Below, one piece after another: positions 854 through 41,129 of a stretch of DNA of 62,594 bases. Position 1 is the first letter of the stretch. Each line of letters starts with the position of its first letter. Location of the stretch: the NCBI GenBank assembly GCA_001938485.1, contig MQRK01245013.1, forward strand, positions 1-62,594. Reading direction: 5' to 3'. This DNA comes from Girardia tigrina. Lineage: Eukaryota. The notes beneath the pieces were generated by a model. The model made no database searches. It was not told where the DNA came from and was given only the letters and a program-made list of their open reading frames with translations. The position numbers were made by a program, and so were the translations under genes.

Positions 854-878
854 ATTATTTTAAATTATTATTTTAAAT

Positions 879-989: not shown

Positions 990-2189
990 GGATCGACGGG
1001 GCTAGTAATTCTATCTTCCGCTAGTACACAGCTTTCAAAACTCAAACTAGGGGTCTGGCAGGACCCGAAGTCATTAAGCTCCCGAGAGGGGGATCCCTCG
1101 TTAAGGATTTCACTTGCAGTAGACTGAGGATTGAAACATGAAATGGTAGAGGCTTGACCGATGAAAAGATACTTAACATCGCAAGTATCTTTGAAAAACT
1201 TAAAATTGATATGTATATACTCACAGAGACGCACTGGATTGGAGCCGGTATTACCTCTTTCGGGGAGTGGAGGATCCATCATAGTGGCAGTACGAGTAGC
1301 ACAAGAGAAAGAGGCGTAGACATGATGGTAAAATCTAAAGATTCTATGAATATCGAATTCGAAGCGATCAGCGAGAGAGTTTTCCTCTGTCACATACCCA
1401 AAAGGTCGATCACATTGGTAGGGGTATACGTTCCGACTGACAACAGATACTCAAGTGAGGAAAAGGAGGAGTTTTTTGCATCATTGCAGGAACATGTCGA
1501 AATGGCGACGGCTGAAGCTGAGAAGAGAAAATTCGAATTGATAGTTGCAGGCGACTTCAACTGTCGACTTATTTGGACGGAGGAAAATTGCAAAACAGTT
1601 GGGTGTTACACTAGTTCAACAGTAACATCAGAAAACGGAGGTCTATTAATAGATCCGGCCGATGCGTGCAACTTACGAGTAGAGAACACCTTCTACAAAC
1701 ACAAGTTGGCGCAACGAACTAGCTGGACACACCCAGCAACGAAGAAAAGGCTATTATTGGATTTACTCCTGTCGCAAAAGAGCAGATGCAACAGAATAAG
1801 TAACGTCAAAAGTTATCCAAACTTTGACTGCGGCTCAGACCACGATTTAGTCGTGTTAACGATATGAATCACCAACAACAATAAGATACTCAAGTTGGCA
1901 AACGATAGAAAGAAGAAATGTAAAGGTAAAATTGATAGGTTCTCCTTGCAGAACAACAAAGTGGCCATCAGTAGTGACATAGGGCAGGTTTGTTCGAATG
2001 TCCAGAGTTGTGACGACATGGAAGAGGTCATCTTAAAGACCACGGAAAGATACCGAAAGAATAAAATCCCGCTCAATCAAAGGTGGATACACGGGTGATG
2101 GTACAAGAGCGGGCGCAGCGATTTTGTGGCTGCGGCGCGCAGGCGGCGGGGAGTGAACATCAAGTCGGGGGATAAAAATATTTTAATCT

Positions 2190-2568
2190 CACGTTTTTTC
2201 GATTCAACACTCGGAACGAATTCAAGAACGAAGTAGAGGACGATGCAGATGACAGTGACACACGGCAAGATCAGTCCAAGACTCACGAGAACTTGCACGA
2301 CAATCAACCAATACGGATTGATGTAGATCCACATCCCTTTAATCCAAAAAACGTCGGCATATAACTAAAAGTAACCCGAAAAACGATTGTTTTTTAATTC
2401 ACTGTTCTTCGATGTATTGAATGACGTTAACCAAAACGGGCTCGCAGAACCAATCGCATAGAACCTGAGTGATACAAAAACACAGATTAATGCCCCGATT
2501 AGGAGCATATCCACAACGTCCATAGATTGTTCGGATCTAATCATTTGAAAAAATATGGCGACTTTCAA
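2190..2568 (-). pseudogene. Claudin/PMP22-like tetraspan gene 5' fragment
   Basis: ORFs 2365-2568 and 2077-2334 are in the same frame, split by one stop. Pattern: TM1-ASPFW...GMW...WLIVVQVLVSLGLIL-TM2, typical of invertebrate claudin-like proteins. Confidence 0.55.
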
Positions 2569-2861
2569 TAATTTTTTAAAAGAAACTCAAATCACTAAGG
2601 AAAAAGACATTCGCTCCGTAACAAAATTTCATTTTTTTTTTAAATTCACAAAATTCGATTCGATTTCAATAACAAAAAAATGGCGACTTTCGATTTTCAA
2701 CAAAATCAAATTCGCGCCAAAAAAATCTCCCATGATCGATTTAAACAAATTCGATCGAAAATAATTAATAACATCGAATAAAAAACTGGCCAATCAGAAA
2801 GGCCGAATAAATAAATTTAAAAAACACACACACAAAACGTGACACATGAAACACCACTTGA

Positions 2862-3453
2862 TCAGGCATTCACACCAAAGCTAGAAACCACACTCCACTG
2901 CTCACCAAGACAACCGAGAATCGATTCACTAAACAAAGAAACGAGTTGATGAGTTCGGAACTGATGGAAACTGTCAAAGAGGACATCCGATAAACTGTTG
3001 TATAAATTCGAAATGTACGCCGATATTTTGATGATCATTGCTTTTTCAAAATTACCGATAAATTGCGAATCGTTGCAAGATAAAAGTTTCGAATGAGTCA
3101 CTACTGGTAATGAAATATACAATTCACTGAGATTCTCGTTTTCTTGATTTTGGCGTTTCTTAGCGGCAATACGAGATTTTTCTCGTTTACAACTCTGTCG
3201 TTCTCTTCACCATTTTTTCCACCGCCCTCAAAAATTAACGATTCGAAATTATTATTGGTTTTATTGATATAATTCAATTCGTAAAATGACGAATTTGTCA
3301 AATCGTTCGATAACAGTTTTTGTATAATGAGTTTTTTGTCGATTTGATCACGGCATTGTTGTTAGAATCGGCATATTGGGAAATGTCGTGATCAAAAAAA
3401 TCAAAATCGGCTTCGTTTTCTAAATTTGGTGGATTGTAACTGTAATTTGCCAT
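2862..3453 (-). pseudogene. bHLH (HIF/SIM/NPAS-class-like) transcription factor 5' fragment, frameshifted
   Basis: KREKSRIAAKKRQNQENENLSELYISLP...FEKAMIIKISAYI resembles the HIF/SIM bHLH motif (KEKSRDAARSRR...ELAxxLP...LDKASVMRLTISYL). Confidence 0.6.
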
Positions 3454-6217
3454 TTCAAATTTCCGATAAACATTCGTTTGTTATGTTGCTTTGACAACAA
3501 TCGTTTAAACAAACGACAAAATGAAATTGTTTTTTTATCGCGAAACGGGCACCTAGAAGAACTGAAACCACTACTGCAGGAGAAATGGAAACGGAGGAAG
3601 GAGTACATTCAGAATAGATGTGAAAGGACATATTCAATATGGAAGGCCTCAAGATTGAACACCTTGCGGCATCTGAGGAAGTGGAAAAGAGAGAGGATTG
3701 AAACAATCGGACAAGAGATAGAAGGTATTCTCAATAGAGAATGTATGGGCAAGACTTCTGAGTTATACACGGAACTCGGAGTCCTCTGCAATAGTGAAAC
3801 AAAGGAATCCTCTCTATGTACTTTGCAGAGCAGTGTGAAGGACGAAGTGTCAGCAGAGCACTTCTCACATCTATCCAAGAAGAGCGAAAGAGATTATATC
3901 GTGGATATCGAACAGAGCCAAACACTAGACATCGATTACTCACCGGACATAGGAGAAGTAAGTACCGCTATTGGGTAACTGAAGAACGGTACAGCTGCTG
4001 GAAACAACGGTATCATTCCAGAGCTATATAAGTGGGGCGGTCTCCAGTTAACTGAAAAGATCCTGCAATGCTTCGTGAACATATGGAGGGAAGAGCAGAA
4101 TTCCCGGAGGCTTGGAAAACGGCGAAGGTCGTGATCCTATACAAAGGAAAGCGGTCCAAGAAGGAACTAAACAATTATAGAGGAATATTCCTACTTGATG
4201 TAGGAGGAAAGATCATGGCCCGAATCATTGCAAATAGATTAATGCCACATTTTGAAAGGATACTGGATTGGTTTTAGACCAAAAAGAAGCACGGTGCACG
4301 CAATAGGTATCATATGAAAGATACAAGAAGAAGCCAGATACCGGAATATAAATGTTTTTGCTATCTTTATCTACCTTGAAAATGCATTCGACAGCGTACC
4401 CTGGAAAGTTCTCTGGGACTGCCTTCAAGGAATTGGAATACAGGATCAGATGCTGAGCATTATCATGAAGTTTCATGAAGGTTTCACGGGCAGCATAGGA
4501 AAGGATAAGTTCAGAATGGACAAAAGAGTCCGCCAAGGTTGCGTATTAGGACCTCTATTATTCAATCTTGTCTTTGATCATGCAATTAAGACCGCAATCA
4601 AAAAGGGACTATCAGGCGGTGTGAAACTGAACTACAATGGGGAAGAGCTGACCGTGAACAGGCTTGCTTATGATGACGACCTGTGCTTATTGGACGAGGA
4701 CTTTGGAAACATCGAAAGAAATCTCACGTGTCTCAACACTGCGTTCTCGAATATGGAGCTCAAAATCAACATTGGGAAAACGAAGATCCTGAATCTCAAT
4801 GGAGCAAAATACATTACGGCAAGGGACGAGTTGAATGCCGGAATTGAATGGGTGGACGAATTCTGCTACCTGAGATCTTTTTTGAAGTCAGCATTATTAA
4901 TTATCAGGATAAGAATGATTAGGAAACTTGAAATTCAATATTTATAAATTTTATAGTAATAATTGAATTTAATGTTAAATGTTAAATTATTCGAGATTAA
5001 ATTTAAGTGTATTTAATTTAAGTTAATATAATTTATTAGGTATTTTTAAATTATAGTATAGTAAATTATTAGCATTTATAATATTATATGGGTTTACAAA
5101 CTGATATCCTCACAAGAAAATATTTATAAATTTATAAACTTTCATTTTGTGTGTTAATAAAAAAAATGTTTGTTTAAATATTTATAAATTTGAAATTGAG
5201 TGTGTAAAACCGTATATCAATAAAGAACTATATTTTTCAAAAGGAATTAAATTTTTGATGTCTGAAGAACCTAACACAACCATCACCCTAAACTGAAAAT
5301 TCAATTCAGATCATAAGAAAAGTACCTTTCAAAATCAAAATATTTGCAGATATATTAACTATCACAAAACAGTTTCTTTATATGATGTCATTGGTGGCAA
5401 AAATTAGTTCCGCATTGTATTTCAGGACAGATCACTTAATGATAATTGAGTTGTAGTTTTAACTTTGTAAGAACATTAATTCTACTTGCTCCTACATCTT
5501 TATGGATGATAGAATAAGTTAGTAAAAAATTTATCAAGTCAAATAATTTATTTAGAAAATTTCATATAATTTCAAAAATTAAAAACACAAACTAAATTCA
5601 AAAATCTCAAAACTACATAAAATTTATTAGAAAAAGGATAATTTAAAATTACAAAAAATAAAGTATTTCTCATTCAAATTTTTTCAAAATTAAAAATTTA
5701 ATATAATATCACAAAAAATTGACGTATATTCAATTTAAATATTAGCATAAAAGTATAAAAAGTATTTTAAAACACTAAAAATGAATAATTCAAAAAAATT
5801 AAATAAATGTTTCATTTAATTCCACACAAAGAAATATAAATGCATATAAAAATATTAGTTTAAAAGAATTAGGAGTAGTACAATTACAATAATTTTATAA
5901 AATTTTAAAATAAAGATAAAGGTTTGGTGAAATGACTATCGATTTTTTAAGAATAAACAAAAATATCAATCAAAAAAAGGTTTTAAAGAAAAGGAGATGA
6001 AAATTTGTTTAAATTTATGTGTGATACCATTAAAAAATTGTGGCGATCACGACCTCAAGTTCTAATATTGAAGATAGCATAAACGCAACTAACAATCGTT
6101 ATCATTATTACTACTATGAAATGAAACATTATCCGATTGCGGAATCAGTATGGTATTTGTCTTGAAAGGAGGAAAGTCACAAAGATTGTATTATCTCTGA
6201 CTGATAATGTACATTTA

Positions 6218-7506
6218 TTAGGTGTACAAGTATGAAATGCGGATTAAATTTTGAAAAGAAATACGTTAAAAACAAAAGAACGATTAAAAAAGCTTTATTC
6301 AAATATGCTCCATTACTAATGATACATTTGTCCTATCTATATCTCAAATTGTGGATACCTCGCCAGTAAAAGTCTTCCTTTTTTTCCATGAACCATTCAT
6401 TGACCCATTTTTGCACATTTTCGTAAGAATCAAAGCGCTGCTGAGCAAGTGCGTGACCCATCGATGCAAACAAATTGTAATCTGAAGGAGCCAAGTCTGG
6501 TGAAAAAGCCGCATGATGTAAAACTTCCCAATTCATTTCCTCCAACATGGCGCGAACCGGTTTTGATGTATGTGACGAAGCGTTGTCATGAAGAAGAATA
6601 ACCTTGTGTTACCTTTTGAGGTATTCAGGTCTTTTTTGAAGCAGCGAACGGTTTAAATCGAGCAACTGTTGTTTGTAACGTAAAGTATTCATCGTTTCAC
6701 CGGGTTTTAATAGTTCATAATAAATTACACCCTTCTGGTCCCACCAAACGCAGAGCATTGTCTTTCTGCCAAAGCGATTTGGTCTGGCTGTCGATGTGGA
6801 TGNNNNNNNNNNNNNNNNNNNNNNNNNNNNNNNNNNNNNNNNNNNNNNNNNNNNNNNNNNNNNNNNNNNNNNNNNNNNNNNNNNNNNNNNNNNNNNNNNN
6901 NNNNNNNNNNNNNNNNNNNNNNNNNNNNNNNNNNNNNNNNNNCTCTCCATCTGCCTATCGTTCAATTGATATGGTACCCATCGGCCAATCTTATGAATCT
7001 TTCCCATCTGCCTGAGGCGATTGCTAACAGCTTGTTGAGTAACACTTAATTGCTCTGCCAGCTGGTTTTGTGTTTGTGAATCATCTTCGTCCAACAAAGC
7101 TTGCAATTCCACATCTTCGAAACCTTTTCGTGGTTTCCCATGGTCCTTATCTGCAACATCAAAGTCACCACCATGGAAGCGNNNNNNNNNNNNNNNNNNN
7201 NNNNNNNNNNNNNNNNNNNNNNNNNNNNNNNNNNNNNNNNNNNNNNNNNNNNNNNNNNNNNNNNNNNNNNNNNNNNNNNNNNNNNNNNNNNNNNNNNNNN
7301 NNNNNNNNNNNNNNNNNNNNNNNNNNNNNNNNNNNNNNNNNNNNNNNNNNNNNNNNNNNNNNNNNNNNNNNTATCAATTTATGAGTTACGTATGAGACAC
7401 TACATAATTACTCAATATTATGACATCATTGCTTAACCATTGACCTACTTTTTGCATTGTGCACAATCCGTTTTCTGAAATCCGCATTTCCTACTTGTAC
7501 ACCTAA
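6218..7506 (-). mobile_element. mariner DNA transposon, ~1.29 kb, defective
   Basis: TIRs TTAGGTGTACAAGTATGAAATGCGGATT with TA TSD. Transposase motifs [21 protein letters not shown] and FSPDLAPSDY. Confidence 0.95.
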
Positions 7507-8524
7507 TAGATATTTTGTTTAATAAAATTGGTGGATATCTTTGTATTTAAAGAATAAAAATTTAAATACACAACTTTTTGTTTGCATTTTAAGAGACAGT
7601 GATGGAATCGGAAAATTCTATAGATACAAGCAAAGTGAAATGCTTTATAAATAGATTGATTCAGAGGAATCTGGTAGTTATTCTAGTTCAATAGAAAATT
7701 GACTGTCTAACCTAATGACAAATAATTGTGACTAAAATATATAAATAATATTCAAATGTAAACAAATCCGACCCACCAAACAAGGAAGGGGGCGGTCGAC
7801 ACACAACCATATTCCAATGATGGTTAAGAGAGTAGATAGAGTAAAGTTTAGAGAATAGTAATTCTTTATTAATCAATTATATTGGCGTAAACATTTCGAG
7901 TTCTGGCTCGAAAACTAATTTCCAAAAGTCCATCAACAGATGACTCGGTATCTCTTACTTAATGGAACTATGAATAAACTCTATCAATATTTACCTTTAT
8001 CTTAAGATTCCATCTTATGACGCATTTGTCATTTATTTGACTGCTGTTCAGTTTACTAAGTCCATGCATTGTTTTAGTTAGCGATCGGGGATAATGGTTT
8101 GAAGAGGATGTACAGGGAATAGTTCCAAATCCTTCGAGTAGACCATCATACGAACCCATAAACCATCTTCCAAGTCACCCTGTTGTACATACCTGTGTGA
8201 CGCAGTTATAATATTCTAATGTCATCTCGATGAATAAATGATTCTAAACCACGTCAAAAGTAATGCAAATAGGATCAAATCGTACGGAACAAACTAAAAG
8301 TATCAAAATATAGATTCTGCAGTTATACAGTTCAAATATGTTGGGATAATTGAAGGAATTCTCGGTCACGATGGCGCAGAAGGATATGAAAAACAGTTAT
8401 TAGTAATCTTAGATAAAATTATTATAAAAATTCAAAAAACAATAAAAATAACCTTGAAAAAAACATGCGATTGATCAAAGGTCAATTAATCATAACATAG
8501 ATAAATAAATATAAGCAGACTCAC

Positions 8525-9399: not shown

Positions 9400-9940
9400 C
9401 AAGATATTATTTACAAAATAAAAACTATTCAACAAAGTACAGGTCATCATTGTCCAAACCATTTTCCATCGATATACTAGTTAACAGATCTGCTCGAAGT
9501 AATATTCTGGCTTCTTTGAATCAAAGAACAGGTGGCATGCTTCATGGACTTTGTCAATTGACTGGAATTTGCAACCCTTCGTGAAATGCTGCATTGAACG
9601 GAAGAGACCATAATCAGATCGGGCACAGTATGGACTATAGTGTGGATGATGCAGAATTTCGACTCCATCCATTTCTTGGAATTAGTCCTTGATCTTTTTG
9701 ACTGTGTCCGGCTTAGCATTGCCTTGCTGCATCAAGACACACTTTCGGTTGATAAGAGCCGGATACTTAGACTTTAACTTGTTATAAACACGTTTTAGTT
9801 GTTGGCAATACAGTTCGGATGTGATGGTGTGATCATTCGGAACCAATTCGAAATATACAATTCCTTCAAAATTCCACCAGAAGCAATTGATGATCTTCTT
9901 GGCGAATCGAATGTGTTTAGTAAATGATGGCATTTGGTCA
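9400..9940 (-). mobile_element. Degenerate mariner transposase fragment (second family)
   Basis: CFWWNFEGIVYFEL, QQGNAKP, HHPHYSPYCARSDYGLF. Confidence 0.85.
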
Positions 9941-10530
9941 ATTTCCCTCTTGTATTTTGTTTTGTACCAACTAATAATAAATAATGTACAAAATATAAAA
10001 TCTATAAAAAAATCTTTCAAAAATATTAATTAGCATTACATTATGCAAGTGTATTAGTGTATTTGCAACTAAATGAACGGTGTATCAGAACTTCTTGACC
10101 AAATTGGTGATATCCCTGTGTGATAAAATATTGACCGTTAACTCGCCCAAGATATTTGATGTTTAACTAATTTCACATTTTATGTTCGAGTTTTAGTTGT
10201 TTTATTTTTTACTTCATTTTTTCACCCCAAATTTTATTTTAATGCAAGAAGTTGATGGTCGATTTGATTGCAAGCCTTTTTAATATCTTCTACAATTAAT
10301 TAATTTAATTTTAAATGGGGCGAAATGCTTTTGCGATAAAATTTTGTAACTATTTCATTATTTTAAAATCTAAAATTGAATTATAATTTTTCACTATTTC
10401 TATTTGTTTTATAAAAAAGCACATCCGTAATAACTTCTTTTATATTTGAATATCATCCAAACGAATTCTTTAAAATAATCATTCTTCAAATTCTTTATTT
10501 ATTTTGTTAATTATTAATTATCGACTAAAA

Positions 10531-13008: not shown

Positions 13009-13059
<51 letters not shown>

Positions 13060-15459
13060 ATGGTAAAATCTATATAATAGGGATAAAAACAAGACGACGC
13101 GTTTCGAGATAATAATTTTAGCCACAATGTATATATTCTGACGTTAAAATCAATTATTTTTTGAACAACTTGGAAAGAACGAAGGAATTCAAAACAAAAT
13201 GTATTTTGTCGGTGTGCGATTGTTTTGCATTGGTCAAATGTGNNNNNNNNNNNNNNNNNNNNNNNNNNNNNNNNNNNNNNNNNNNNNNNNNNNNNNNNNN
13301 NNNNNNNNNNNNNNNNNNNNNNNNNNNNNNNNNNNNNNNNNNNNNNNNNNNNNNNNNNNNNNNNNNNNNNNNNNNNNNNNNNNNNNNNNNNNNNNNNNNN
13401 NNNNNNNNNNNNNNNNNNNNNNNNNNNNNNNNNNNNNNNNNNNNNNNNNNNNNNNNNNNNNNNNNNNNNNNNNNNNNNNNNNNNNNNNNNNNNNNNNNNN
13501 NNNNNNNNNNNNNNNNNNNNNNNNNNNNNNNNNNNNNNNNNNNNNNNNNNNNNNNNNNNNNNNNNNNNNNNNNNNNNNNNNNNNNNNNNNNNNNNNNNNN
13601 NNNNNNNNNNNNNNNNNNNNNNNNNNNNNNNNNNNNNNNNNNNNNNNNNNNNNNATATATATATATATATATATATTCTAACAAAAAATTATTTAAAATA
13701 TCACTAATAATTAAAATATAATATCATTAATAACAAGATTTTTGATCCAGTAATAAATATCTGAAATTTAATATCAAAATTATTTTTTCTATTATAAGAA
13801 ATGAATTAATTAACACAGAATATTCATTTATTAAATCAAATTAAATATGGTCAAAATATAATTATTTTATATATTATGTAAAAAAATGCGCTCAACATTT
13901 CAAAATCGATTTTATATCTCTTCAAACCAAAAATGGAGGATGATCAAAAATCATTTGTTTAATTATGCAAAAATTATATTTTTTGTAAAAGAAATTTCCC
14001 CAATTTTGTGTCATGGTAGAGAAGGAAATGTTTCCTCAAATATTATACAGTATCAAATTTAAATTAGAAAGATTGTCTGTAAATTAGTTCCTTCATATTA
14101 AAAATCATTCCCTCTTTTAGAACCAATTATTGAGATTTTAATTCTTTTTATGCCACAATGCTGACATGATTGTCAGAATAGGCGCTCCCTGATTTGAGAA
14201 TGTGAGGAATATTTGGAATGTTTATGTTTTGTATTTGAATGTTGTGTGTCGATTTGGGATTGTCTCTCTCCTACGCAGATGGATGATTAATATTTTAAAA
14301 CTTATTATCTGAAACTAATTTATTCACATTTATTTTTAATTTATTATGATTGTACATTTTAAATGATTTCATTAATTTTATTTTTAAATTTGTAAATTTT
14401 TCAATCAAATTGATATTTTTAAATGATTAATAGTAATTTTAATTTTAACTATTAACATTGTTAGTAAATATTTTTAAAAGAATATGTAGGTTCAAGTTAG
14501 TTCAGATTTTTGGATGAAAATTATGAAGCTTTGATCGGTGAATATGAGTGAAAGCTCTTTGTAGATTCTCAGAAAGATAATCCAAATGTAATAAATGTAG
14601 TAATAAATGTGTTAGTTCTATTAACAGAATACATTACTTATTTTATTATTTATAATATCCAATTATTTATTTATTTGATCATTCTCATTCAATATTTAAA
14701 TCAAATATCATTTATCATTAAGCCAAAAATTGAATTGTTTCCGCTTTCAGATATGATCGGCATTTACAAATTTGATAGTTTTTTACTTGGCTTGATCACG
14801 GACACGCAACTTATTTGTATGATGTTTACGGATCATTTGTTAATGTTTGTGAAACGGCATTATTCATTTTATATATCACAAACAATCAATTTTTAACATA
14901 CTTTAAACGTTGAAAATAAATGTACTAAAAAATTTTATTTTACAACTTTCAGTCCTACGATCAAAATGCTCCTAAAATGTTTGTTAAAAAGTAGAATTGC
15001 CTAAATAATCTTGAGTAACCAGTATCGGTGATCAGAGAACGACCCTGTCTAAAAGGAGTCAATCCTTATTATATTTATATACAACAAGGATGCCAATAAA
15101 CAATCTATTTTATGAGCTATTGCGTTGGCTTTCATAATACCAATAGTTCGTATTGTTATCCCACTTGTTTATTCATCATGGTATACTTAACCCTTGGAAA
15201 TATGGTAAGTTTCTGGTAATTTTAAGGTTATTCTAGTCCATTTTTTATGTAAAAACATTCAATAATTTTGATGGGAATGTCCACAAAGGAAGTTCTCGAT
15301 TCTCTATGTCCTTCCTTAGACTATTTTCTAATTCTTTGTGCATCATTTGCTCTAACAAAAATTGAGAGTTTCTGATTTTGCTTGCAAATTTTTTTGCGTA
15401 CATAATAATTTTTACTTTTTTTATATAAACAAATAAACGCCATTTAAAAATATATTTTA

Positions 15460-15500
15460 GGATAATTAATTTTGACGGTTTAACCGTCATCATCAGATCA
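15460..15500 (-). ncRNA. Type I hammerhead ribozyme, mutated (GAAA->AAAA)
   Basis: CTGATGA-T-GACGGT taa ACCGTC-AAAA-TTAA-TT on the minus strand. Confidence 0.7.
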
Positions 15501-16679
15501 CTGATTATGTTCTTTTTTATTGCTTTTATATAAGAAATGAATGATTATGTAATCACTTACGTAAGTCTAATCGAAAACTCTTAACAAATTAGTTGAGAGT
15601 GCTGTTTGAACATTGATTTTAGGATCACATGATCTTATCAACAATGCTTCACATGACGCTCTCTCCTAATAATTTTTAAAATGCTTGCAGAAAATCTTAA
15701 AATCATTTATGCTTATATTACATTTATGCGTTTTTTTATGCTCAGCAATATCACTCTTTCCCCCTTTTTGACTGTGTTCTTGGACTCGTTTGCAGAGATG
15801 ACGGGCAGTCTCTCCTATGTATGTGGCATTGCACCCATTACATGTGTATTGATAAACAATGTCCGAACACAATCCTAAAGGAGTATGTGATTTATTGCAA
15901 ACATATTCTTAACTTTAAATGATTGAGAAATAATTTTTAAATTTAAAATGTTATTTGTTGATTTCATTATAATCTTTACAGTAGAACAGGAAATAAATGG
16001 AAAATTACCATTCCTTGATTTGTTAATTGAAAGGAAAAATGATCATTATGAAACTGAAATATATCGAAAGAAACTGACACTGGTTTGTACACCTCCATAA
16101 ACAGTTTTTGTGAGTTTAAATATAAAAGGAATATGATCAAAGGTTTGTTATACCGCTCTTGGTCTCTTTCTTCCACGTTTTCAAAATCTATTAAAAGTAT
16201 TGATACATTGAGCAAGTTATTGAATAATAACGGTTACTCTAAGTCCATCATAGACAGACTTTAAAGTTGAGAATATGTTTTGCCATAAATCACATACTCC
16301 TTTATGATTGTGTTCGGACATTGTTTATCAATACACATGTAATGGGTGCAATGCCACATACATCGGAGAGACTGTCCGTCATCTCTGCAAACGAGTCGAA
16401 GAACACAGTCAAAAAGGGGGAAAGAGTGATATTGCTGAGCATTAAAAAACGCGTAAATGTAATATGAGCATAAATGATTTTAAGATTTTATGCAAGCATT
16501 TTAAAAATTATTGGGAGAGAGTGTCACGTGAAGCATTGTTGATAAGATCATGTGATCCTAAAATTAATGTTCAAACAGCACTCTCAACTAATTTGTTAAG
16601 AGTTTTCGATTAGACTTACGTAAGTGATTGCATAATCATTCATTTCTTATATAAAAGCAATAAAAAAGAACATAATCAG

Positions 16680-16720
16680 TGATCTGATGATGACGGTTAA
16701 ACCGTCGAAATATATTATCA
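16680..16720 (+). ncRNA. Minimal type I hammerhead ribozyme of the Penelope pLTR
   Basis: TGAT-CTGATGA-T-GACGGT taa ACCGTC-GAAA-TATA-TT-ATCA: intact core, stem I TGAT/ATCA, palindromic stem III region. Confidence 0.85.
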
Positions 16721-18760: not shown

Positions 18761-18827
18761 TGCTTTAACAAAAATATATTCTAAAAATTTCAAAATATTA
18801 TTATACATATAAATATATATATATATA

Positions 18828-23031: not shown

Positions 23032-23186
23032 ATAAATTATGTCAATGTCTCAGCAACACAATCATAAGATCATAAATTATGTCAATGTCTCAGCAACACA
23101 ATCATAAGATCATAAATTATGTCAATGTCTCAGCAACACAATCATAAGATCATAAATTATGTCAATGTCTCAGCAACACAATCATA
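23032..23186. repeat. 40-bp tandem repeat, about 3.9 identical copies
   Basis: Unit ATAAATTATGTCAATGTCTCAGCAACACAATCATAAGATC. Confidence 0.95.
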
Positions 23187-26888: not shown

Positions 26889-28520
26889 CAATACCGGACA
26901 GCCTAATTGGATCAAGGACATTTTCCTTCATAACTTTTTAGAATAAGGTACTATTGCACCCATTTTTACAACGATTGTTAACGTGGTCTATGCTAACATC
27001 ACGTGTAAATTTTAGCAAATTCTGATTATCTTTTGATGCATAAGTAGAGTAGAATTCATTTATGGGCCGACAGCCTAATTGGATCACAAGAAATAACTCT
27101 CCATGCACGCATCTATATAACTAGATGTTTTGCTTGTGCCGTCATTATTTACTGCTTATTCATCATGGACATATCCTCAGCACGCCGTCATTCGATAATA
27201 ACATTGCATCAAACTGGGAATTACACACAACGTGAGATTGCAAACTATGTCAAAGTTCCACAAAGCAGTGTGTCACGCATTATTCATCTGTAGCAGGAAA
27301 CTGGCTCAGTAGAGCCCCACAGAATTGGCCGGCCCCCAACTAATCGTCGTTTTTCTACTCATGATGTTCGTATGCTTGTTAGAGCCTCAAAACAAGATCC
27401 AAAGGCCACAGNNNNNNNNNNNNNNNNNNNNNNNNNNNNNNNNNNNNNNNNNNNNNNNNNNNNNNNNNNNNNNNNNNNNNNNNNNNNNNNNNNNNNNNNN
27501 NNNNNNNNNNNNNNNNNNNNNNNNNNNNNNNNNNNNNNNNNNNNNNNNNNNNNNNNNNNNNNNNNNNNNNNNNNNNNNNNNNNNNNNNNNNNNNNNNNNN
27601 NNNNNNNNNNNNNNNNNNNNNNNNNNNNNNNNNNNNNNNNNNNNNNNNNNNNNNNNNNNNNNNNNNNNNNNNNNNNNNNNNNNNNNNNNNNNNNNNNNNN
27701 NNNNNNNNNNNNNNNNNNNNNNNNNNNNNNNNNNNNNNNNNNNNNNNNNNNNNNNNNNNNNNNNNNNNNNNNNNNNNNNNNNNNNNNNNNNNNNNNNNNN
27801 NNNNNNNNNNNNNNNNNNNNNNNNNNNNNNNNNNNNNNNNNNNNNNNNNNNNNNNNNNNNNNNNNNNNNNNNNNNNNNNNNNNNNNNNNNNNNNNNNNNN
27901 NNNNNNNNNNNNNNNNNNNNNNNNNNNNNNNNNNNNNNNNNNNNNNNNNNNNNNNNNNNNNNNNNNNNNNNNNNNNNNNNNNNNNNNNNNNNNNNNNNNN
28001 NNNNNNNNNNNNNNNNNNNNNNNNNNNNNNNNNNNNNNNNNNNNNNNNNNNNNNNNNNNNNNNNNNNNNNNNNNNNNNNNNNNNNNNNNNNNNNNNNNNN
28101 NNNNNNNNNNNNNNNNNNNNNNNNNNNNNNNNNNNNNNNNNNNNNNNNNNNNNNNNNNNNNNNNNNNNNNNNNNNNNNNNNNNNNNNNNNNNNNNNNNNN
28201 NNNNNNNNNNNNNNNNNNNNNNNNNNNNNNNNNNNNNNNNNNNNNNNNNNNNNNNNNNNNNNNNNNNNNNNNNNNNNNNNNNNNNNNNNNNNNNNNNNNN
28301 NNNNNNNNNNNNNNNNNNNNNNNNNNNNNNNNNNNNNNNNNNNNNNNNNNNNNNNNNNNNNNNNNNNNNNNNNNNNNNNNNNNNNNNNNNNNNNNNNNNN
28401 NNNNNCGTGATGTTAGCATAGACCACGTTAACAATCGTTGTAAAAATGGGTGCAATAGTACCTTATTCTAAAAAGTTATGAAGGAAAATGTCCTTGATCC
28501 AATTAGGCTGTCCGGTATTG
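26889..28520 (+). mobile_element. Tc1-like transposon with long TIRs (mostly gap)
   Basis: Perfect TIRs of at least 115 bp (CAATACCGGACAGCCTAATTGGATC...), TA TSD. HTH N-terminus YTQREIANYVKVPQSSVSRII followed by GRPP, with a premature stop. Confidence 0.92.
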
Positions 28521-29084: not shown

Positions 29085-29790
29085 ACCAAGGACACGCTAC
29101 CCTTCCCGACAGACTGACAGAAATTACCAACATTCCAATTCCAACAACCGTCACTCAGCTCTGCAGTTTCCTCGGAACGGTGTATTTCTGCAATTGATAT
29201 TTACCAATCTGCTCCACCTTAACTGCTTTTTTATCCTCCATAAGCACGGGAAACAAGAACACTAAAATCCAATGAACGACTTTAACCTTCTAAAGAGTAA
29301 ACTTCAAAACTTAAAAATCCTGGCTTATCCGAATTTTACAGCTCAGCTTTTTCTCGCAACAGACGTCTCGACTATTGCCACGGGAGCGGTACTTCATCAA
29401 TTACATGAAAATGAACATCAACCCCTGTAATTCTTTTACAGAACATAACACACTCACATTCTTCATCTTATTACCCTCAATCAAATGGTTTAGTTGAAAG
29501 ACTTTTTCGAACAACAAAGGAGTTAATGGGATCATGCATGATGGCGAACAGGACAGATAACTGATCTGACATTTTAACAGTGATTGATTTGGACTACGAT
29601 GTTCAAATCAAAAGACAACAGGCCTTAGTCCATTTGAAATTGTTTACGGTAGAAACCCAATAGTTTTAACCACAACCAACAATGAGTTAACAGCAAGATT
29701 AATAAGTGATTATGTGATGTGGCTTAAACGAGAACAAGAAAAGTTAAACAAATTGATAATAGACAAAATGAAAACAGGTTTTGGTTACGC
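29085..29790 (+). mobile_element. Gypsy/Ty3 pol remnants (RT-RNase H and integrase)
   Basis: QLCSFLGTVYF, FLATDVS..ATGAVLHQ, YYPQSNGLVER, TGLSPFEIVYGR. Confidence 0.85.
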
Positions 29791-29819
29791 AGCTGTATAT
29801 ATATATATATGTGTATATA

Positions 29820-30468
29820 TGTCACGACCCATTTGTTCGTAGCAGTTTTGAACGCTCAGAGCCCCCAGTGACTGTTAAGGGTCAGTCACAACCCAGTCTT
29901 AATTTATTACTCAACTATGACTATATATATTACTTATACATTATAGGGTCGGACGCCTCTTTTCGCTCGACATCTGCCTGGCAGTGCCGAGTCTGAAGGG
30001 CCTGCGGGTTCGGATAAAGATGGGATGGGCTATGGGCCCCCCACCTAACTCAGAGCCGATCGGGGTATGTTTTGTACAAATATTCATCAGTAGATTTGGA
30101 TCACGTCTATGCTTAATAGGTATGCTGAAACTTGTTACACGGTTATGTCGATTTATAACTTGTGGCCTTGTGTTATGTGATGTTGAGCTTATGGCAATGT
30201 TGTGTAATGTGGCTTGCAGCACTGTTGGGTTTCTAGAAGTATTATCAACAACAGTATGTGTTGTTATCGTTGTGTAGCTCATTTATCTCGCAGCATATCG
30301 ACAATCAGTCCCTTTGTACCTTGCGCGGATTCATTGTTTCCATATAACAGTTGTATTTATATTCATATAACTTGTATTAATATCATTTATATTTATACCA
30401 AATATATTTATATCAATCAAAGTAATTATTAATATCAAAAATTATATTAATATCATGATTACGTCACA
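29820..30468. mobile_element. Solo LTR (~650 bp)
   Basis: TGTCACG...CGTCACA termini with a TATA target-site duplication inside a (TA)n tract. Confidence 0.7.
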
Positions 30469-33149: not shown

Positions 33150-34399
33150 TATATATATGAAACACATGGTATAAGCAATTAAGTGTCGAAGACAAAGTAC
33201 TCGTTAAAGAAAGCGGAGAGAGTAGATTCGGTAAACCAATATAAAGTGGACCATATACAATACAAAAGATTTTAAATAAGTATACTTATATTCTTCAAGA
33301 TGAAACATCGTAGAAAGTAATGAGAAGAAATTATAATCAGTTAAAAAAATACAATTGGGAATTAAACGCACCAATAGATTATGAATCAAGTACGTCATTT
33401 ATATCCAGGAAAGAATCAATTGCCAGAAAGACGAGATACCCGATTAGAAGCACCAGGAAACCACTACCAAAATATTGTTGATTTCCAAAGGGGAAGTTAT
33501 ATTATAATTTATGATAATTATTAAAAATGAATAAAAAATAGAAATTATTAATAATAGGAATTTATCTTGTTTAAAAATAAATGTTTAAACATTGTTTTTT
33601 GTTAATAAATATTTAGTAAACCATCTTATTAATCTTTTAAGACTATATGTTTGATGATAATTAAAAAAATATAAATAAAGGAAGGAAATTAGTCGATTAA
33701 AGAAATTCGATTAAACGAATTAGATGAATGGCACTGATCTCGATCCTATTTTGGTATCTTTAGAAACCGGAGAGTTGTCATTTTGCAATTCAAATCAAAG
33801 TGCTTCAAATTCACTGAAACAGAAACGAAAAAAATCTCAACGAAAGAAAACGAAATCAGAAAGTAGAAAATCATTGAAAGAATCAATCACTACAGTTGTT
33901 GATCAAGAGTACTGATTGTGTTAAAATGTGTATACAATTAGGGTGAAGAAAGAGCTCTCAGAAACGGAAATTATTTCATTCAATTGTTTCAATTTCGTCG
34001 TATCATCCTTATTTTGCAATTCCGTTCTTGATTCATAAAATATTTTAAATGCTTTTTGATTATCTATAAAAAATTTATTTCAATCAATCAAGCGTGATAA
34101 AGTCAAAATAAATCAATCACCGTAATCCATTGGACATTTTGTGGTATGTTAATTTCGAAAAAATTCAAATTGTAATACGGAAAAATAATTCAAGGGACAA
34201 ACTAGTGGAAAAATCAATTTGAATTGAACGGGCGATTTTTTTGAGTATAAAAAACAAAAAATCGAATTTGTTTGTGGTGAATAATAAATCGAATTTGTAT
34301 GTTGATGTGCTTTTGTTTAAAACGATCATCTGTATGCGATAAATTAAAGGTGGAACATGGTTTTTGTAATCGATTCGAACTAAATAAATTATTTCGGCG

Positions 34400-34650
34400 C
34401 AAATTTTGTTGTTTCTTTTGAAATTTTGTAATTCACCATTGATTTTTTTTGAATTCTCGGAGAATATCGGATAATTTTGATTAAATGGGAGGATTTTGTT
34501 TTCGAAATGATAATTATTGCCGCCCGATCGATTGTGCGAATCGATTTTCAAACAAGTGTTTTATTTGCAGTGAACTCATCAGCTCGGAGGTTGTTTCGGC
34601 GTTGAGTCATCACTGTCACAATGATTGTTTCACGAATGTGATGGTGTATT
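34400..34650 (+). pseudogene. LIM-domain (abLIM/UNC-115-like) fragment
   Basis: GGFCFRNDNYCRPIDCANRFSNKCFICSELISSEVVSALSHHCHNDCF resembles the abLIM LIM1-LIM2 junction (GGFFIKNGEYLC..DY..YGTRC..C.EFVEGEVVTALG..YH..CF), with lost cysteines and an upstream stop. Confidence 0.65.
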
Positions 34651-35009
34651 TGCTCCTGGTAATCGAGTGACAATGAAAGATAAAAAATTCATGTGTAGTT
34701 ATTGTTAAAACAGAACTGACAAATTATCGGCTATTAAAAAGAGCTCCATACCAAATTCTAATGACGATGCGACTAGCGATCAAAGGTATATAGGATCCGA
34801 CGCAACATCCCTTTTATCTCCAACTGAAGCGGGAGTTCTAACGTTGGTAATTGTTTTTTCCTCAAGATCCGTAGCTCATCCCCTAACACCGGAGAGTCAC
34901 AGCTATGCATTCGCTGCGCAACACACTCTGTTATCACTATAACATTTTCCTTTTTTAATGTTTTTTGTAATGAAATTTAAGATAATAAATCCAACCACGC
35001 ACAATAATA

Positions 35010-36268
35010 TTAGGTGTACAAGTATGAAATGCGGATTAAATTTTGGAAAGAAATACGTTAAAAACAAAAGAACGATAAAAAAAGCTTTATTCAAATATGC
35101 TCCTTTACTAATGATACATTTGTCCCATCTATATCTCAAATTGTGGATACCTCGCCAGTAAAAGTCTTCCTTTTTTTCCATGAACTATTCATCGACCCAT
35201 TTTTGCACATTTTCGTAAGAATCAAAGCGCTGCTGAGCAAGTGCGTGACCCATCGATGCAAACAAATGGTAATCTGAAGGAGCCAAGTCTGGTGAATAAG
35301 CCGCTGGAGGTAAAACTTCCCAATTCATTTCCTCCAACATGGCGCGAACCGGTTTTGATGTATGTGACGAAGCGTTGTCATGGAGAAGAATAAACTTGTG
35401 TTGCCTTTTGAGGTATTCAGGTCTTTTTTGAAGCAGCGAACGGTTTAAATCGACCAACTGTTGTTTGTAACGTTCACCGTTTCACCGGGTTTTAATAGTT
35501 CATAATAAATTACACCCTTCTGGTCCCACCAAACGCAGAGCATTGTCTTTCTGCCAAAGCGATTTGGTCTGGCTGTCGATGTGGATGGCGTNNNNNNNNN
35601 NNNNNNNNNNNNNNNNNNNNNNNNNNNNNNNNNNNNNNNNNNNNNNNNNNNNNNNNNNNNNNNNNNNNNNNNNNNNNNNNNNNNNNNNNNNNNNNNNNNN
35701 NNNNNNNNNNNNNNNNNNNNNNNNNNNNNNNNNNNNNNNNNNNNNNNNNNNNNNNNNNNNNNNNNNNNNNNNNNNNNNNNNNNNNNNNNNNNNNNNNNNN
35801 NNNNNNNNNNNNNNNNNNNNNNNNNNNNNNNNNNNNNNNNNNNNNNNNNNNNNNNNNNNNNNNNNNNNNNNNNNNNNNNNNNNNNNNNNNNNNNNNNNNN
35901 NNNNNNNNNNNNNNNNNNNNNNNNNNNNNNNNNNNNNNNNNNNNNNNNNNNNNNNNNNNNNNNNNNNNNNNNNNNNNNNNNNNNNNNNNNNNNNNNNNNN
36001 NNNNNNNNNNNNNNNNNNNNNNNNNNNNNNNNNNNNNNNNNNNNNNNNNNNNNNNNNNNNNNNNNNNNNNNNNNNNNNNNNNNNNNNNNNNNNNNNNNNN
36101 NNNNNNNNNNNNNNNNNNNNNNNNNNNNNNNNNNNNNNNNNNNNNNNNNNNGTATGAGACACTAGATAATTACTCAATATTATGACATCATTGCCTAACC
36201 ATTGACCTACTTTTTGCATTGTGCACAATCCGTTTTCTGAAATCCGCATTTCATACTTGTACACCTAA
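35010..36268 (-). mobile_element. mariner transposon, second copy of the 6218-7506 family
   Basis: Same TIRs and TA TSD, near-identical sequence, YSPDLAPSDYHLF. Confidence 0.95.
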
Positions 36269-37589
36269 TATTTGAATTATAGAAATACTGCGTCATCCGC
36301 AAATTCAAACAAAGGCATTTAATTTGGCTATGAAATTCCCATTTTATCTTATTTTTGTTACCAAATATTTTCTTATCCATGAAATTAAATAAGATTAATG
36401 ATTGAGTATGATGAGCAGAACTACGAAACTTTTGTAAATAATTTGAATTTATGTAAAAAAATTCTGAAAGAGAATCTACTTTTTTATAAGTGTAAAAATT
36501 AAATTTGTAAAATAAATTTATGTTATAATGGAAAAAAATATAGCGTTATTTGTGTTAAAAGAAAATAAAAAACTACGAAATTGGTTTCGTTTTCAATGAT
36601 TAAAAAGGACATGATTTTGAATTTAGGTGGTACGTAGGAATCGAGTAATTCGTTTAATAAGTCAGATTTGGAAAACTTCAAGCACCTTTCGGTCATATCT
36701 GGATAGACCAGAAGTGCAGGGAGATTATTGAGGAATCTCGACAGATATGTGTCGACACTTTACAGATCCCATTTACTGGCAGCATTTTATGTGACTGCAA
36801 ATCAATTGATAAACAGATTAAATGGTCAAAAAATGAATCCAAAGGGAGCAGTTTATGCAGTTTTTCCGCGAGGAAAAGGTGATCGGTGAGATTGCTCTCC
36901 CTGAATTCTTCCCACTACGAATCAAAAATCCCCTAAAGGCACGAGATCATGGGGGCCGAGCTTACGCGTCAATAATCTATATTGGTAAATTGTTGCTTTA
37001 TATTCTGTTTGATTTCATAAAAATAAAATCTCGGTTTAATAATAATTGAATTTTTAATCATTATAAGTTACTCTTCAAATATATTGAAGTTGATGGAGGT
37101 TTAATTATTGAACTTTCTCATTAACAGCGACATTTTTGATACTCTATAGAGAACAATACTCTCGTCGGCTACCAGATCATCAATAATTTCAGCTGGTCCT
37201 GTGAGTACCTTTCATTATCTATCAACTGATCGGCTGTTTCAAATTCACTCTCAAGATCTTTTTCATATTCATTGCCTAAAAGTTAAAAGTCTGCGCTAGT
37301 ACAATGNCACCTGCCGTAATCTCTCTCATGATCGACTCCCAGAAATATATTTTAACATATTTCCAATATATATTTACACTCCATCAACCTTGTAAGATGA
37401 TTCCATAAGAATTGACAAGAAAATACTTTAATGAAAATTAATTTTTTAATTTTAAAATAACATGCTTTTATTATTATTATTCAAACCAAGTCAAGAGATT
37501 AATTTGAATATTCTGGATCCGTTATTGTATATATTTATATATTTAGTATAATAAAGATAATATAAATAATAATTCTTATTTATCCTACC

Positions 37590-38060
37590 ACCCCTCTTCT
37601 TTAAAAGGTTTAACCATTCGATATATCTGTGTATTATTCGACCCGTTTTACTACGTATCATCGAGGACCGATCATGTCCTTTATAATTAATTTCATAAGG
37701 TCTGTCATAACGATCCAAACCTTTTTATCCATTGTCTATTTTCCCTAATATTCAGTGTTCAACCTGAAAATCCAGTTTTATAGTAGTTTTCATTTGTTTC
37801 GCATTTTTTATTTTTTAATTTTATCAATGATTTTCTTGTTAACAACTCGTTATGTCGGGAGACATCATTAGTCAGTCATTTTCAAATAATTATATCCAAC
37901 CGAACTATATCCAATCGTGCTTTTTATTTGTGTTCGCACTGAACTCTATCTCCGGTAATAATTCTGCCCAAAGTTTAAGTTCCCTTTCTTTCAGTGTCAC
38001 GTTTGATGCATCTCGAACGGTTCGAGAGCGGATAACTATAGTTCCTTTAGAACTATAGTT
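37590..38060 (-). mobile_element. Gypsy integrase C-terminal remnant with polypurine tract
   Basis: WAELLPEIEFSANT, DRYDRPYEI (GPY/F-like), then AAAGAAGAGGGG followed by TG. Confidence 0.6.
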
Positions 38061-39899
38061 GTATGGACTTTAAAATTCTATCTTAATCAATACTATATAT
38101 GTCATTAATCTCCATCCAGGAGTGACGACTCTTGTGTCACCATTCAAGTTCATTATTTTGGTCTTTTTGATGCTTATTATGAAGTTTCGTAATTATATCG
38201 ATCCGATGTTGATGGTTGTCGCTGTGTTGGTGGCGGTATTGAGGACATTTTCCTGGTGGATAATTTGTCTTTCACGCCTCTTTATCTGTTTAAGTTCCAT
38301 GCCTGGATTTTGTAGACTGACGATTTGACATGGTCATTTTAATTCGTTCAAATTCGTCTTATGTAATTTTTCCAGCCAGTTTTTCAACTTCAACTACTGC
38401 TTTTTTGCAAACCACGAGGGGGAATGATTGTCTGACTCCCATTAATACTTTCAAAGCGTAATTGACTTTCTCCCCCAGAATCTCCGTGTTTTTTCGTTTC
38501 CATTGCCTTAGCTTTCGAATCAACTTCTTTCTTAGATCTTTACATCAGCTCATCTCGGTTCATGATGTAAAACTTGGTTTCTTGACAATTGCGTAAAGAC
38601 AATTGCGTACATGAAAATTTAATCAATAAAAATTTATTAATTAAATATCGATTGCTTAATATTATTGGGTATTAGAAATCTTTAATATAATTATTTACTT
38701 TTAAAACACAAATCTTGAATCTTTAATCGTAAATCTCTATTCTTTAATCTTTAATCAATAATCTTTAATCCGAAATCTTTAATCTGACTCCAATTATTCA
38801 GAAAGGACTTCCAACATCAATATATAGACAATGAACACAAATCCTTTTATGAAACTTTATTTCAAATAACAAAAATTAACAAGTCAAAAACAATAATAAT
38901 AATTCAATTCTTGATGAAAGAACACAAACACAAAAACAATGTTTCGTACGAGTTAACAGATTACAGTAAAAACTGTGAATCTCCAAAACGAACGAATGTT
39001 TAAATTTAAATTAAACCTTTTTCTCCCATACGGGCGGGATACTTGTGGTTTAAAGAATAATATTTTAAAAAGAATAATAAATAATAGAAATAATTTTGAG
39101 TTTACTTGCTTCCTTTTGTTTTTTTGATGAGAGAATTTTTGGGCAAACTAAAACTAAATTTGCTGCTGTTTATATAGTAATTTTCATCAGCCTTGAAAAT
39201 TGATGAAGTAAAACAAAGACTAAAATATTTATAATTTTTAATTCCAAGTTTTGTTAAACTAAATATTATTTTGTTTGAAATTAATAATTTTACTAAAAGA
39301 ATTATTTAAAAATTTTCCTATATAAAAGTTTAAAAAATCGATATCATATGTTTGATGCACATTTTGATTCTCTATCTGAATATGCAATTAGAATTTTCAT
39401 ATATTGATTACTTTTTCCTATGGTTTTGTGATAAAAGAAACAAAAAAGATTCCAGTGATTATTAAATCAAATAAAATAGTTAAACTAATAATCTCATGTT
39501 TTAAGAGATAAAAAGAACTCCATATCCATAGAAACATTCGATTTATTTTTAAATAATAAATTAAATTAAAATTTCCCTAAATTCTAATAAAAAAGTAACT
39601 TTTATCGATTTCAATGTTTGCCAGACGCAGTGAATCATTAGATGCAATAGAAATCGAAAAACTCGTCAATGCAAATTCGATTTATTTATTCGGAAAACCG
39701 AATCTCATCAATATAATTGAGAAATCACTTTTATCAGTGACGTTGATTTCGAAAAAGAAGGAGAAATTGTCGGTTATGCGTCTTTTTACGATTATCCGAA
39801 CATTTCCGAACTGGATTCGGGTTGCGATTGGAATTGCATGTGCGAATTGGAGGATTTCGAGCAAGCCAATCCTTTCAATACGCCTTTCATGTACTATTT

Positions 39900-40171
39900 T
39901 TTCTCACAATCCGATCCGGCATTGATTCGTTCAGAATAATATGATTTAAATTTCGGAAGATTTGTGTTACAAACTTTCAAATGTTGCTTCAATTTGTGTT
40001 CATAAACCGAGTGCTTATCATCGATCGAGCAAATAATAAGTTTCTTTTGTTCATTGGATTCATTAGTGACAGAATGTTCGTGGCAACATTCACTGGGCAG
40101 TTTGGTAAATTCTCGACAATTTCGTTTTTTGTGTGCGAAACAAAATACTTACATATGATAAAATCGGCCAT
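39900..40171 (-). pseudogene. TRMT13: tRNA m4X methyltransferase TRM13 N-terminal zinc-finger fragment, frameshifted
   Basis: CKYFV/KKRNCR...CHEH...KKLIICSIDDKHSVYEHKLKQHLKVCN...YYSERINAG matches the TRMT13 CCCH and CHHC fingers. Confidence 0.8.
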
Positions 40172-40174
40172 GGA

Positions 40175-40483
40175 ATGAAATTATGCTTTCTATAGATTAA
40201 AATTGAGTGAACTGTTGTCATGACCTTTGTTGATTGGCCCGTTTATGTGTGTTGTGAACTATATTGGAGTGTGTATGCGTATGTCTCGTGGAATTTTTGT
40301 GAGCGAAAATTGAATCGAATTTTTTGTGAACTGTTTTAGTTTAATTCGAATTTTAGTTTTTGTTTAATCGAGTGAATTTTAATGCAAAAATTTTTTTGGC
40401 GCGAAATTTTTTCTCGATTGTTTTGAGATTCACCATATTTTTTTGGTAATTTAAAAATCGTGATTTGGTGATTTAAAAATCGA
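40175..40483. promoter_or_regulatory. Bidirectional promoter-like segment between the TRMT13 and STIP1 fragments
   Basis: Lies between divergent start codons. Contains GATTGGC (reverse CCAAT), TTTTGGCGCGAAA (E2F-like) and CCATATTTT (YY1-like). Confidence 0.55.
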
Positions 40484-40950
40484 ATGCCGAAAGATTTAAA
40501 AAAATAAAAGCAACAAGGCTTTAAAGTCGGGAAAAATTCATGAAGCTATAAAATATTATTCGGATGCTATTAAAATTAATGCAGAAGAATGCATTAAATT
40601 TCAATCTGATTGGGCCAAAGGATGTTCTTGCACAGCTGCCGCCTTAGAATTCCTGGGACGATTTGATGAAGCAATTTTAGTGTATGAACACGTCTTATCA
40701 CTCGAACTGGATAATGAATACGTGTCTAAAAATCTCATGGACTTACGAAATCGAATCACTGAAGGTGGCGATCAGCGTTGGTTTTCATCGACCTCAATCT
40801 TTAATGTCGCTGGCTTTATGCAGAAGCTAGAAAATCATCCTCGAACTCGTGCATATCTCAATGATCCGGTATTTAAAACGAAAATGTAAATGATGAAAAC
40901 CAGTTCGAATTTAATCAATATGATGCTATAAGACAAACAAATTATGAATA
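40484..40950 (+). pseudogene. STIP1: STI1/HOP co-chaperone 5' fragment (TPR1-DP1), with internal deletion, frameshift and stop
   Basis: KSNKALKSG..EAIKYYSDAIK//DWAKG.S..AAALEFLGRFDEA ... LENHPRTRAYLNDP. The NHVLYSNRSAA segment is missing. Confidence 0.85.
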
Positions 40951-41129
40951 CTACTGAAGTTAGATTGAGAGGGCAATCCCGAAATGACGCTCCAACGTTC
41001 CGGAAGTCGGCAAAGTCCGGGTATGATAACCTCTTTTTCCTCCTAGCAACCCGTATTCCACCTCCCAACGCTAGCGCGCCGCAGCCACCAAACCGTTGCG
41101 TCTGCTTTGTTATCACTTATAATTAACAT

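Follow-up and report, generated by a model that had tools for sequence, protein, structure and literature searches.

The window analysed here comprises positions 1 to 62,594 (62,594 nt) of contig MQRK01245013.1 from the Girardia tigrina genome assembly GCA_001938485.1. It is AT-rich (31% G+C) and dense with transposon remains, and it holds three blocks, designated A, C and B in order along the contig, in which decayed fragments of host genes abut diverged copies of one short sequence module, here called T. A sequence-only reading of the same DNA had drawn attention to a GC-rich hairpin motif at the ends of these blocks and had proposed that it marks the termini of an element family that picks up promoter-proximal host DNA. 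The strings it quoted are present where it placed them and the observation was confirmed overall, while the interpretation is partly supported.

Results

The hairpin motif is the core of the longer module T, which measures about 95–120 bp. T occupies positions 2096–2215 on the minus strand in A, where it ends in CATCA, positions 40995–41115 on the plus strand in B, where the element ends in TTATCA, and positions 34815–34936 on the plus strand in C, where it ends in CA; this 3′ CA is invariant across A, B and C. The proposed homology of the three motif copies was established by leave-one-out profile searches for T across the whole window on both strands. Each two-copy profile retrieved the omitted third copy as the best non-training match (E 6.1e-8, 1.3e-6 and 1e-4), and the next matches, which constitute the background, began at E 0.3. 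These profile searches of both strands found no fourth copy of T in the window, and a degenerate T pattern gave no matches among the metagenome contigs. The copies share 63–77% identity locally and 48–59% in a four-way alignment, and T differs by 25–45% between copies. They are therefore old and strongly diverged, which argues that their junctions are not assembly collapses, and all three blocks and their flanking repeats are free of N.

A 6-bp stem with a 9-nt loop had been described within the motif. As sequence it is shared by all three copies, with the palindrome 15–18 nt from the element end. As structure it found no support: four of the stem pairs are invariant across the three copies, one is altered on one side only (to G-U in B) and one is broken in C. 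None of the six pairs covaries, and fold energies are ordinary (z-scores of −0.9, −2.6 and +0.9). The stem-loop is thus a conserved sequence whose structure is not demonstrated.

Copy A (2096–3544, minus strand, 1449 bp) lies inside a long interspersed nuclear element (LINE) located at 1–4950 on the plus strand. This LINE, with a C2H2 ORF1, an endonuclease and a reverse transcriptase (RT), is decayed, lacks its 3′ end and has a single interruption, which is A. Copy A contains no N and no open reading frame (ORF) for a transposition protein. The 5-bp direct repeat reported beside A proved real: ACGGG, as read on the plus strand, is found at 2091–2095 and again at 3545–3549, forming a perfect 5-bp target-site duplication (TSD). 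The open frames of the LINE that end at 2095 and resume at 3550 are in phase only after the insertion and one copy of the repeat are discounted, as determined by coordinate arithmetic alone with the two halves read separately. The perfect duplication and the phase of the LINE frame together identify A as a discrete insertion in the LINE, and its bounds are firm. Terminal inverted repeats (TIRs) were sought in A and none was found.

For B and C, the pentamer that follows the T end was sought 0.9–2.2 kb upstream, followed by a 5′ end resembling that of A. Copy B (39422–41115, plus strand, 1694 bp) is flanked by pentamers at 39417–39421 and 41116–41120 that match at four of five positions. Its 5′ end resembles A's, aligning to the first 18 nt of A with a single gap; when A's end served as the sole template, the configuration of B was reached at 0.4% of random positions (P ~0.004). 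Copy C (33648–34936, plus strand, 1289 bp) has TG...CA ends and is flanked by CTATA pentamers at 33643–33647 and 34937–34941, which match at all five positions. The bounds of B are likely and those of C are plausible. In both B and C, TGATAA occupies positions 8–13 of the 5′ end and mirrors the 3′ TTATCA. A 5′ pattern defined post hoc occurs 10 times in 125 kb (both strands), three of these occurrences being correctly oriented and located at the predicted ends. The proposal that a mobile unit terminates at the motif is upheld by the insertion of A with its perfect TSD, by the perfect pentamers of C, and by the 4/5 match and A-like 5′ end of B. A TSD in the 4–6 bp range of a solo long terminal repeat (LTR) is accordingly present at A (5/5), C (5/5) and, with one mismatch, B (4/5).

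The sequence between these ends derives from host genes and differs between copies. The genes represented encode Hop/STIP1, a CHHC zinc-finger protein, CFAP61, a LIM protein, a small membrane protein and a bHLH-PAS-like protein. In B, a fragment of the CFAP61 N-terminal domain (CFAP61_N, E 1.6e-5) is found at 39721–39936 on the plus strand, followed by the start of a CHHC zinc-finger (zf-U11-48K) gene at 39897–40148 on the minus strand (E 2.7e-6). This gene start is divergent from the N-terminal third of Hop/STIP1, which runs from its start codon at 40484–40975 on the plus strand and comprises TPR and STI1 DP domains (PDB 7kw7, E 3e-26). The Hop piece is decayed: it has at least one frameshift, has lost about 22 residues internally and contains premature stops. 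A length-limited protein search with it found no further copies. In C, a decayed internal piece of a multi-LIM gene, consisting of the end of one LIM domain and the start of the next, is located at 34485–34667 on the plus strand (abLIM2, E 6.8e-5). In A, both fragments are on the minus strand and decayed. The first (2196–2379) is a 184-bp piece of a small membrane-protein gene that shares 91% nucleotide identity with positions 328–511 of the metagenome contig L003, within the gene P0126. The second (2865–3452) is the 5′ part of a bHLH-PAS-like gene, whose assignment is weak (bHLH_HIF1A, E 0.024; no PDB match).

That the cargo differs between copies, as had been claimed, is borne out by tblastx comparisons between the blocks, which yielded only T and a second shared module, M1, and no hidden common cargo beyond these two. 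The concentration of host fragments in the motif-bearing blocks, relative to the remaining window, was likewise confirmed. The 229 stop-free ORF pieces outside the blocks, scanned in three batches with unequal length cut-offs and E-value thresholds, gave no host domains at these thresholds; apart from chance-level matches, the domains recovered were those of transposases, RT-type RNase H and integrases. Host fragments are therefore concentrated in the three blocks. The description of the cargo as promoter-proximal fails as a rule. The LIM piece is gene-internal, and that of the membrane-protein gene covers its 3′ part and downstream flank.

Module M1 is found on the minus strand at 2540–2810 in A and on the plus strand at 40215–40490 in B and 34215–34470 in C. 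It is collinear in all three blocks, 400–640 bp upstream of T, and consists of an E2F-like GGCGCG, 39–44 nt of spacing, TC[A/G]CCAT and a T run. The copy in A is promoter-like, with a reverse CCAAT, GGCGCG, 39 nt, and TCGCCAT with a T run, this last unit being duplicated 125 bp apart. In leave-one-out searches the omitted copy was always the top match, but at E 1.4e-3, 0.075 and 4.4e-4. The M1 of B lies between the two divergent gene fragments, with the Hop start codon after it, and from this arrangement the spacer of about 300 bp is probably a native bidirectional promoter. If so, the cargo of B takes in at least one whole bidirectional promoter together with the opening codons of both genes.

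The three blocks had been called unlinked, which is not the case for B and C, as they lie about 4.5 kb apart on the same strand. Immediately beyond B, a conserved 289-aa protein, X, is represented by a pseudogene in three stop-free pieces (41158–41973, minus strand). Its 3′ end is about 40 bp from the end of B, and it reads toward T. Host DNA had also been said to lie always on the same side of the motif; this is contradicted at B, where the X pseudogene is on the opposite side. Next to the pseudogene lies a patch, R (41976–42151), which is the native 5′ flank of X and is 861 bp from the T end. A second copy of R beside C (37077–37252) is 873 bp from the T end once a mariner element inserted 70 bp to the right of C (35006–36272, minus strand) is discounted. 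The mariner was removed from inverted repeat to inverted repeat, making this distance independent of the length of the assembly gap that it encloses (35592–36151). The two R copies are reciprocal best matches in the window (E 2.7e-5 and 4.9e-8).

In three contigs from related organisms, R is again the 5′ flank of X (L001 413–586, L002 2–114 and L004 2–45). The flank retains 82% nucleotide identity, while protein X is only 45–49% identical to that of the relatives; R may be a conserved first exon with intron, a regulatory element or a small RNA. An ATGG-type motif resembling that of M1 is found at its start. Scans with Rfam models and for tRNAs, permissive ones included, gave no match in T, the blocks, R or the related contigs. 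Beside C there is at most a faint remnant of X (BLASTP E 0.001, from a single comparison). The left flanks of B and C show no paralogy and are not alignable. The near-identical pentamers, X and R that are common to B and C suggest one insertion that was later duplicated with the X locus. T is absent from the 440–500 bp downstream of X in L001 and L002. The possibility that T is the 3′ untranslated region of X was rejected on this ground; L004 ends inside X and is uninformative.

The metagenome contig L003 (862 bp) contains an intact frame of P0126 (64–567), encoding a 167-aa membrane protein that belongs to no Pfam family. The first 84 nt of T follow 36 bp after this gene (profile E 6e-12), with 79% identity to A. 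The similarity to T ends in the hairpin loop and gives way to a different 8-bp palindrome, and 30 bases past the T part is a 37-nt stretch that matches the M1 region of A at 84%. The order is therefore gene, T and M1 piece in L003, and M1, gene fragment and T in A, where about 91 bp between the membrane-protein fragment and T are missing relative to L003. Either L003 is a rearranged family member, or most of T is the 3′ flank of the P0126 gene and only the last 30–35 nt are the true element end. A scan of the metagenome for loci related to P0126 found none.

Discussion

The T-ended blocks can be read as a family of short (1.3–1.7 kb), non-autonomous mobile elements with defined ends and a 5-bp duplication, most likely of integrase type and similar to solo LTRs, a reading whose chances we put at about even. 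Integrase-type insertion is suggested by a 5-bp TSD at both independent sites, by the 3′ CA common to all copies and by the TG of C. The proposed family would encode nothing for its own movement, with a DDE integrase-type enzyme supplied in trans. T would be its conserved 3′-terminal module, each copy would carry a related 5′ end and a 5-bp TSD, and the interior would be a mosaic of decayed host-gene pieces lying both ways round. Most economically, the units are read as solo LTRs or LTR-like units. They would belong to a retrotransposon lineage in which the interior of the LTR was repeatedly rebuilt from host DNA, and members may have exchanged interiors through recombination at the conserved ends. 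The ancestor of B and C would have inserted about 40 bp downstream of X and later been duplicated together with the X locus. An LTR-type origin had also been suggested by the sequence-only reading, from a polypurine tract followed by an LTR start on the opposite strand. Integrase-type origin is still the leading guess, on other grounds, and the polypurine argument falls: the purine run is present only at C, where it lies outside the repeat-bounded unit, B has none, and comparable runs occur about 0.8 times per kb.

Solo LTRs and the LARD and TRIM elements resemble these units in the 5-bp duplication, the 3′ CA (with TG...CA in C), the kilobase size and the lack of coding capacity. They share with them, as do transducing LTR elements, the occurrence of an isolated copy inside another repeat and the carriage of host-derived sequence. 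Known LTR transductions lie between the LTRs, whereas here the host fragments would lie inside the LTR and differ by copy. Transduction of host gene fragments by LTR retrotransposons is exemplified by Bs1 of maize (reviewed in PMC6431247). Of the U3-R-U5 layout of an LTR, with its promoter and polyadenylation signal, a promoter-like module (M1) is seen in the units described here.

A number of observations weigh against a solo-LTR-like origin. Unlike solo LTRs, the units do not conserve a 5′ TG, as the 5′ dinucleotide is TG in C only, GG in B and TT in A, and they have no TIR, the subterminal 6-nt match of TGATAA and TTATCA being the only inverted similarity. No second T or block that could serve as partner LTR was found near A, B or C. 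Searches of the window found no paired LTRs, primer-binding site (including one of TGG type 3′ of T), polypurine tract in the expected place, adjacent gag-pol or autonomous partner. The 51 ORF pieces flanking B and C carry no transposable-element protein domains (RT, integrase or gag), and the pol scrap at 29266–29839, considered as an LTR internal region beside B and C, was rejected as it lies 3.8 kb from C and is not adjacent. The 5′ ends were not recovered by profile searches. The 5′ boundary of C is not significant alone with A as template (P 0.4), and with B as template the best candidate for C is the one with the perfect repeat, again not significant alone (P 0.14). The three copies are also not independent, since only two insertion events are documented, that of A and that of the ancestor of B and C. 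If they are duplicates, B and C need a second process for their different interiors; the T of B is closer to that of A than to that of C, and duplication alone explains neither fact. M1 may be shared promoter grammar and not part of the element. The main caution on T and its hairpin as a functional terminus comes from L003, as much of T may be captured host 3′ flank and not an element-specific end.

The same features could belong to a so far undescribed non-autonomous flatworm element with asymmetric conserved ends, a 5-bp duplication and an interior that host DNA, entire bidirectional promoters among it, has replaced again and again, which is conceivable but on the unlikely side. Copies of such an element would differ in the gene starts that they carry between a common pair of end modules.

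It is unlikely that the units are LINE-dependent retroposons, in which T would be a 3′ tail recognised by the RT of a non-poly(A) LINE, and target-primed copying of transcripts that begin upstream and stop at T, with SVA-like 5′ transduction, would place varying host DNA on the 5′ side only. Such a mechanism would account for a conserved 3′ module with everything 5′ of it varying, for an end that is precise in three copies and for the lack of terminal repeats. It would also suit the position of A in a LINE-rich region. The G-U-compatible change in the stem of B fits an RNA on the T strand, but the change in C fits the other strand. SVA-type retroposons with 5′ transduction, such as the MAST2 exon-promoter group, are likewise non-autonomous, with a conserved 3′ part and promoter-proximal host DNA on the 5′ side. 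The units described here differ in having no poly(A) tail, nor any A-rich or simple-repeat tail, and in a duplication that is 5 bp at both independent sites and not variable. Their cargo, with a promoter and an oppositely oriented gene start, is genomic in character and neither spliced nor mRNA-like. A and B share a 5′ end, while such retroposons are usually truncated variably at this end, and no LINE in the window carries a T tail, the LINE hosting A being without its 3′ end.

An explanation with no transposon family at all is likewise improbable. T, M1 and R would then be host cis-elements or gene flanks, the blocks would have arisen from segmental duplication and template-switching repair, and A would have been captured at a staggered break. 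The strong conservation of R as a native host-gene 5′ flank (82% nucleotide identity across species) speaks for this, as do the arrangement in L003, in which an intact gene is directly followed by part of T and, 30 bp on, by part of M1, the status of B and C as neighbouring copies of one larger unit, and the resemblance of M1 to ordinary promoter grammar. Against this account stands the clean insertion of A, whose perfect 5-bp duplication sits precisely at the T end. The T end also forms the junction in three contexts (the LINE, gene X and another flank), the relatives lack T downstream of X, and the left flanks of B and C cannot be aligned.

A non-autonomous DNA transposon that moves by cut and paste and belongs to a superfamily either undescribed or unrecognised, with minimal asymmetric ends, a 5-bp TSD and transduplicated, Pack-like host fragments, is distinctly unlikely. 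The fixed length of the duplication, the definition of both ends and the genomic type of the cargo in both orientations are as expected of such an element, and the 5′ TGATAA of B and C is mirrored by the 3′ TTATCA. A Pack-type element had been one of the original suggestions; as a Pack-type TIR transposon it is not supported, for beyond this 6-nt subterminal match no real TIR exists. Pack-MULEs and Pack-CACTA elements are similar in their short conserved ends, their non-autonomy and their host mosaics in both orientations, promoters included. They differ in their long TIRs and in duplications of 9–10 or 3 bp, as against 5 bp and asymmetric ends here; the 5-bp duplication does not fit MULE, CACTA or hAT elements. 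Transib elements do make 5-bp duplications, and their ends start with CAC. We know of no superfamily with 5-bp duplications that has termini such as these. No matching transposase was found in the window, which contains only mariner, Tc1-like and piggyBac remnants.

A Helitron or Helentron origin, in which the motif would be the 3′ subterminal hairpin of a rolling-circle element that captured host DNA by read-through, is excluded: the GC-rich 6-bp palindrome 15–18 nt from the end, the asymmetric ends, the multi-gene patchwork cargo in both orientations and the further host DNA after the motif in B, as in end-bypass capture, are all Helitron-like, but Helitrons leave the target unduplicated, integrate at A|T sites and carry 5′ TC and 3′ CTRR ends, none of which applies here, and the junctions of A, the 5-bp duplication at A and C, and the lack of Rep/helicase and of hairpin covariation contradict it.

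If the units are LTRs, they would represent a lineage that replaces its own promoter region by host promoters, an unusual form of regulatory renewal for a retroelement. A family with defined ends that carried parts of housekeeping genes, promoters included, to new sites would give rise to pseudogenes, chimeric transcripts and ectopic promoters. Transposons that capture host fragments are well documented in plants, and Helitrons that do so in a few animals. Flatworm genomes have a large repeat fraction that is poorly classified. As far as a limited literature search on gene capture by planarian transposable elements shows, no such family is known in flatworms, and planarians are discussed in PMC6431247 only for the giant Burro elements. 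We classify the blocks as a non-autonomous mobile family that carries host fragments, for which solo-LTR-like insertion is the leading, though unproven, mechanism. Mosaics of this kind would mislead gene prediction in flatworm genomes, and T would offer annotation a 100-bp signature with which to flag them.

Other features of the window

The mariner beside C is one of two copies, the other being at 6216–7508, that are 96–97% identical and have inverted ends of 30–32 bp. Both contain assembly gaps, which in the copy at 6216–7508 are located at 6803–6942 and 7182–7371. The two sides of the gap at 35592–36151 are collinear with the other copy at 96–97%, which fits a single mariner spanning the gap, with the join itself unproven. 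Two further gaps between the blocks, 13243–13654 and 27412–28405, play no part in any argument. An older, third remnant of a mariner-type transposase is found at 9682–10020.

In the LINE that hosts A, the C2H2 zinc fingers of ORF1 are located at 11–706, and an inverted second fragment of the ORF1 region, 84% identical, is found at 53260–53513. The LTR-retrotransposon pol scrap at 29266–29839 is on the plus strand. It retains the beginning of an RT-linked RNase H domain, the last part of an integrase core and a stretch of the integrase C terminus; most of the intervening gene is missing. Three remnants neighbour one another at 47884–48609, 49464–49757 and 50630–51001: a Tc1-like transposase ORF with a gap, a fragment of a piggyBac-type transposase and a BED-finger ORF.

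Amid this transposon debris, the only long intact gene (45345–47201, minus strand) encodes a 618-aa BACK/kelch-repeat protein. Its best named relatives are trematode and cestode proteins annotated as ‘Kelch-like protein 10’ (53–57% identity), and it shares 81% identity with a protein on another contig; these relationships point to a flatworm, and not a human, source for the DNA. A 500-bp inverted repeat with 96% identity (15417–15919 and 16260–16764) is separated by a 340-bp spacer and may represent either a foldback element or DNA-transposon termini; pieces related to it are found at 54405–54791. A perfect tandem duplication of 75 bases with a 5-base spacer is located at 23032–23186. The region 44200–44600 has a G+C content of only 8%, and comparably extreme AT tracts occur at 33505–33672 and 38615–38769.

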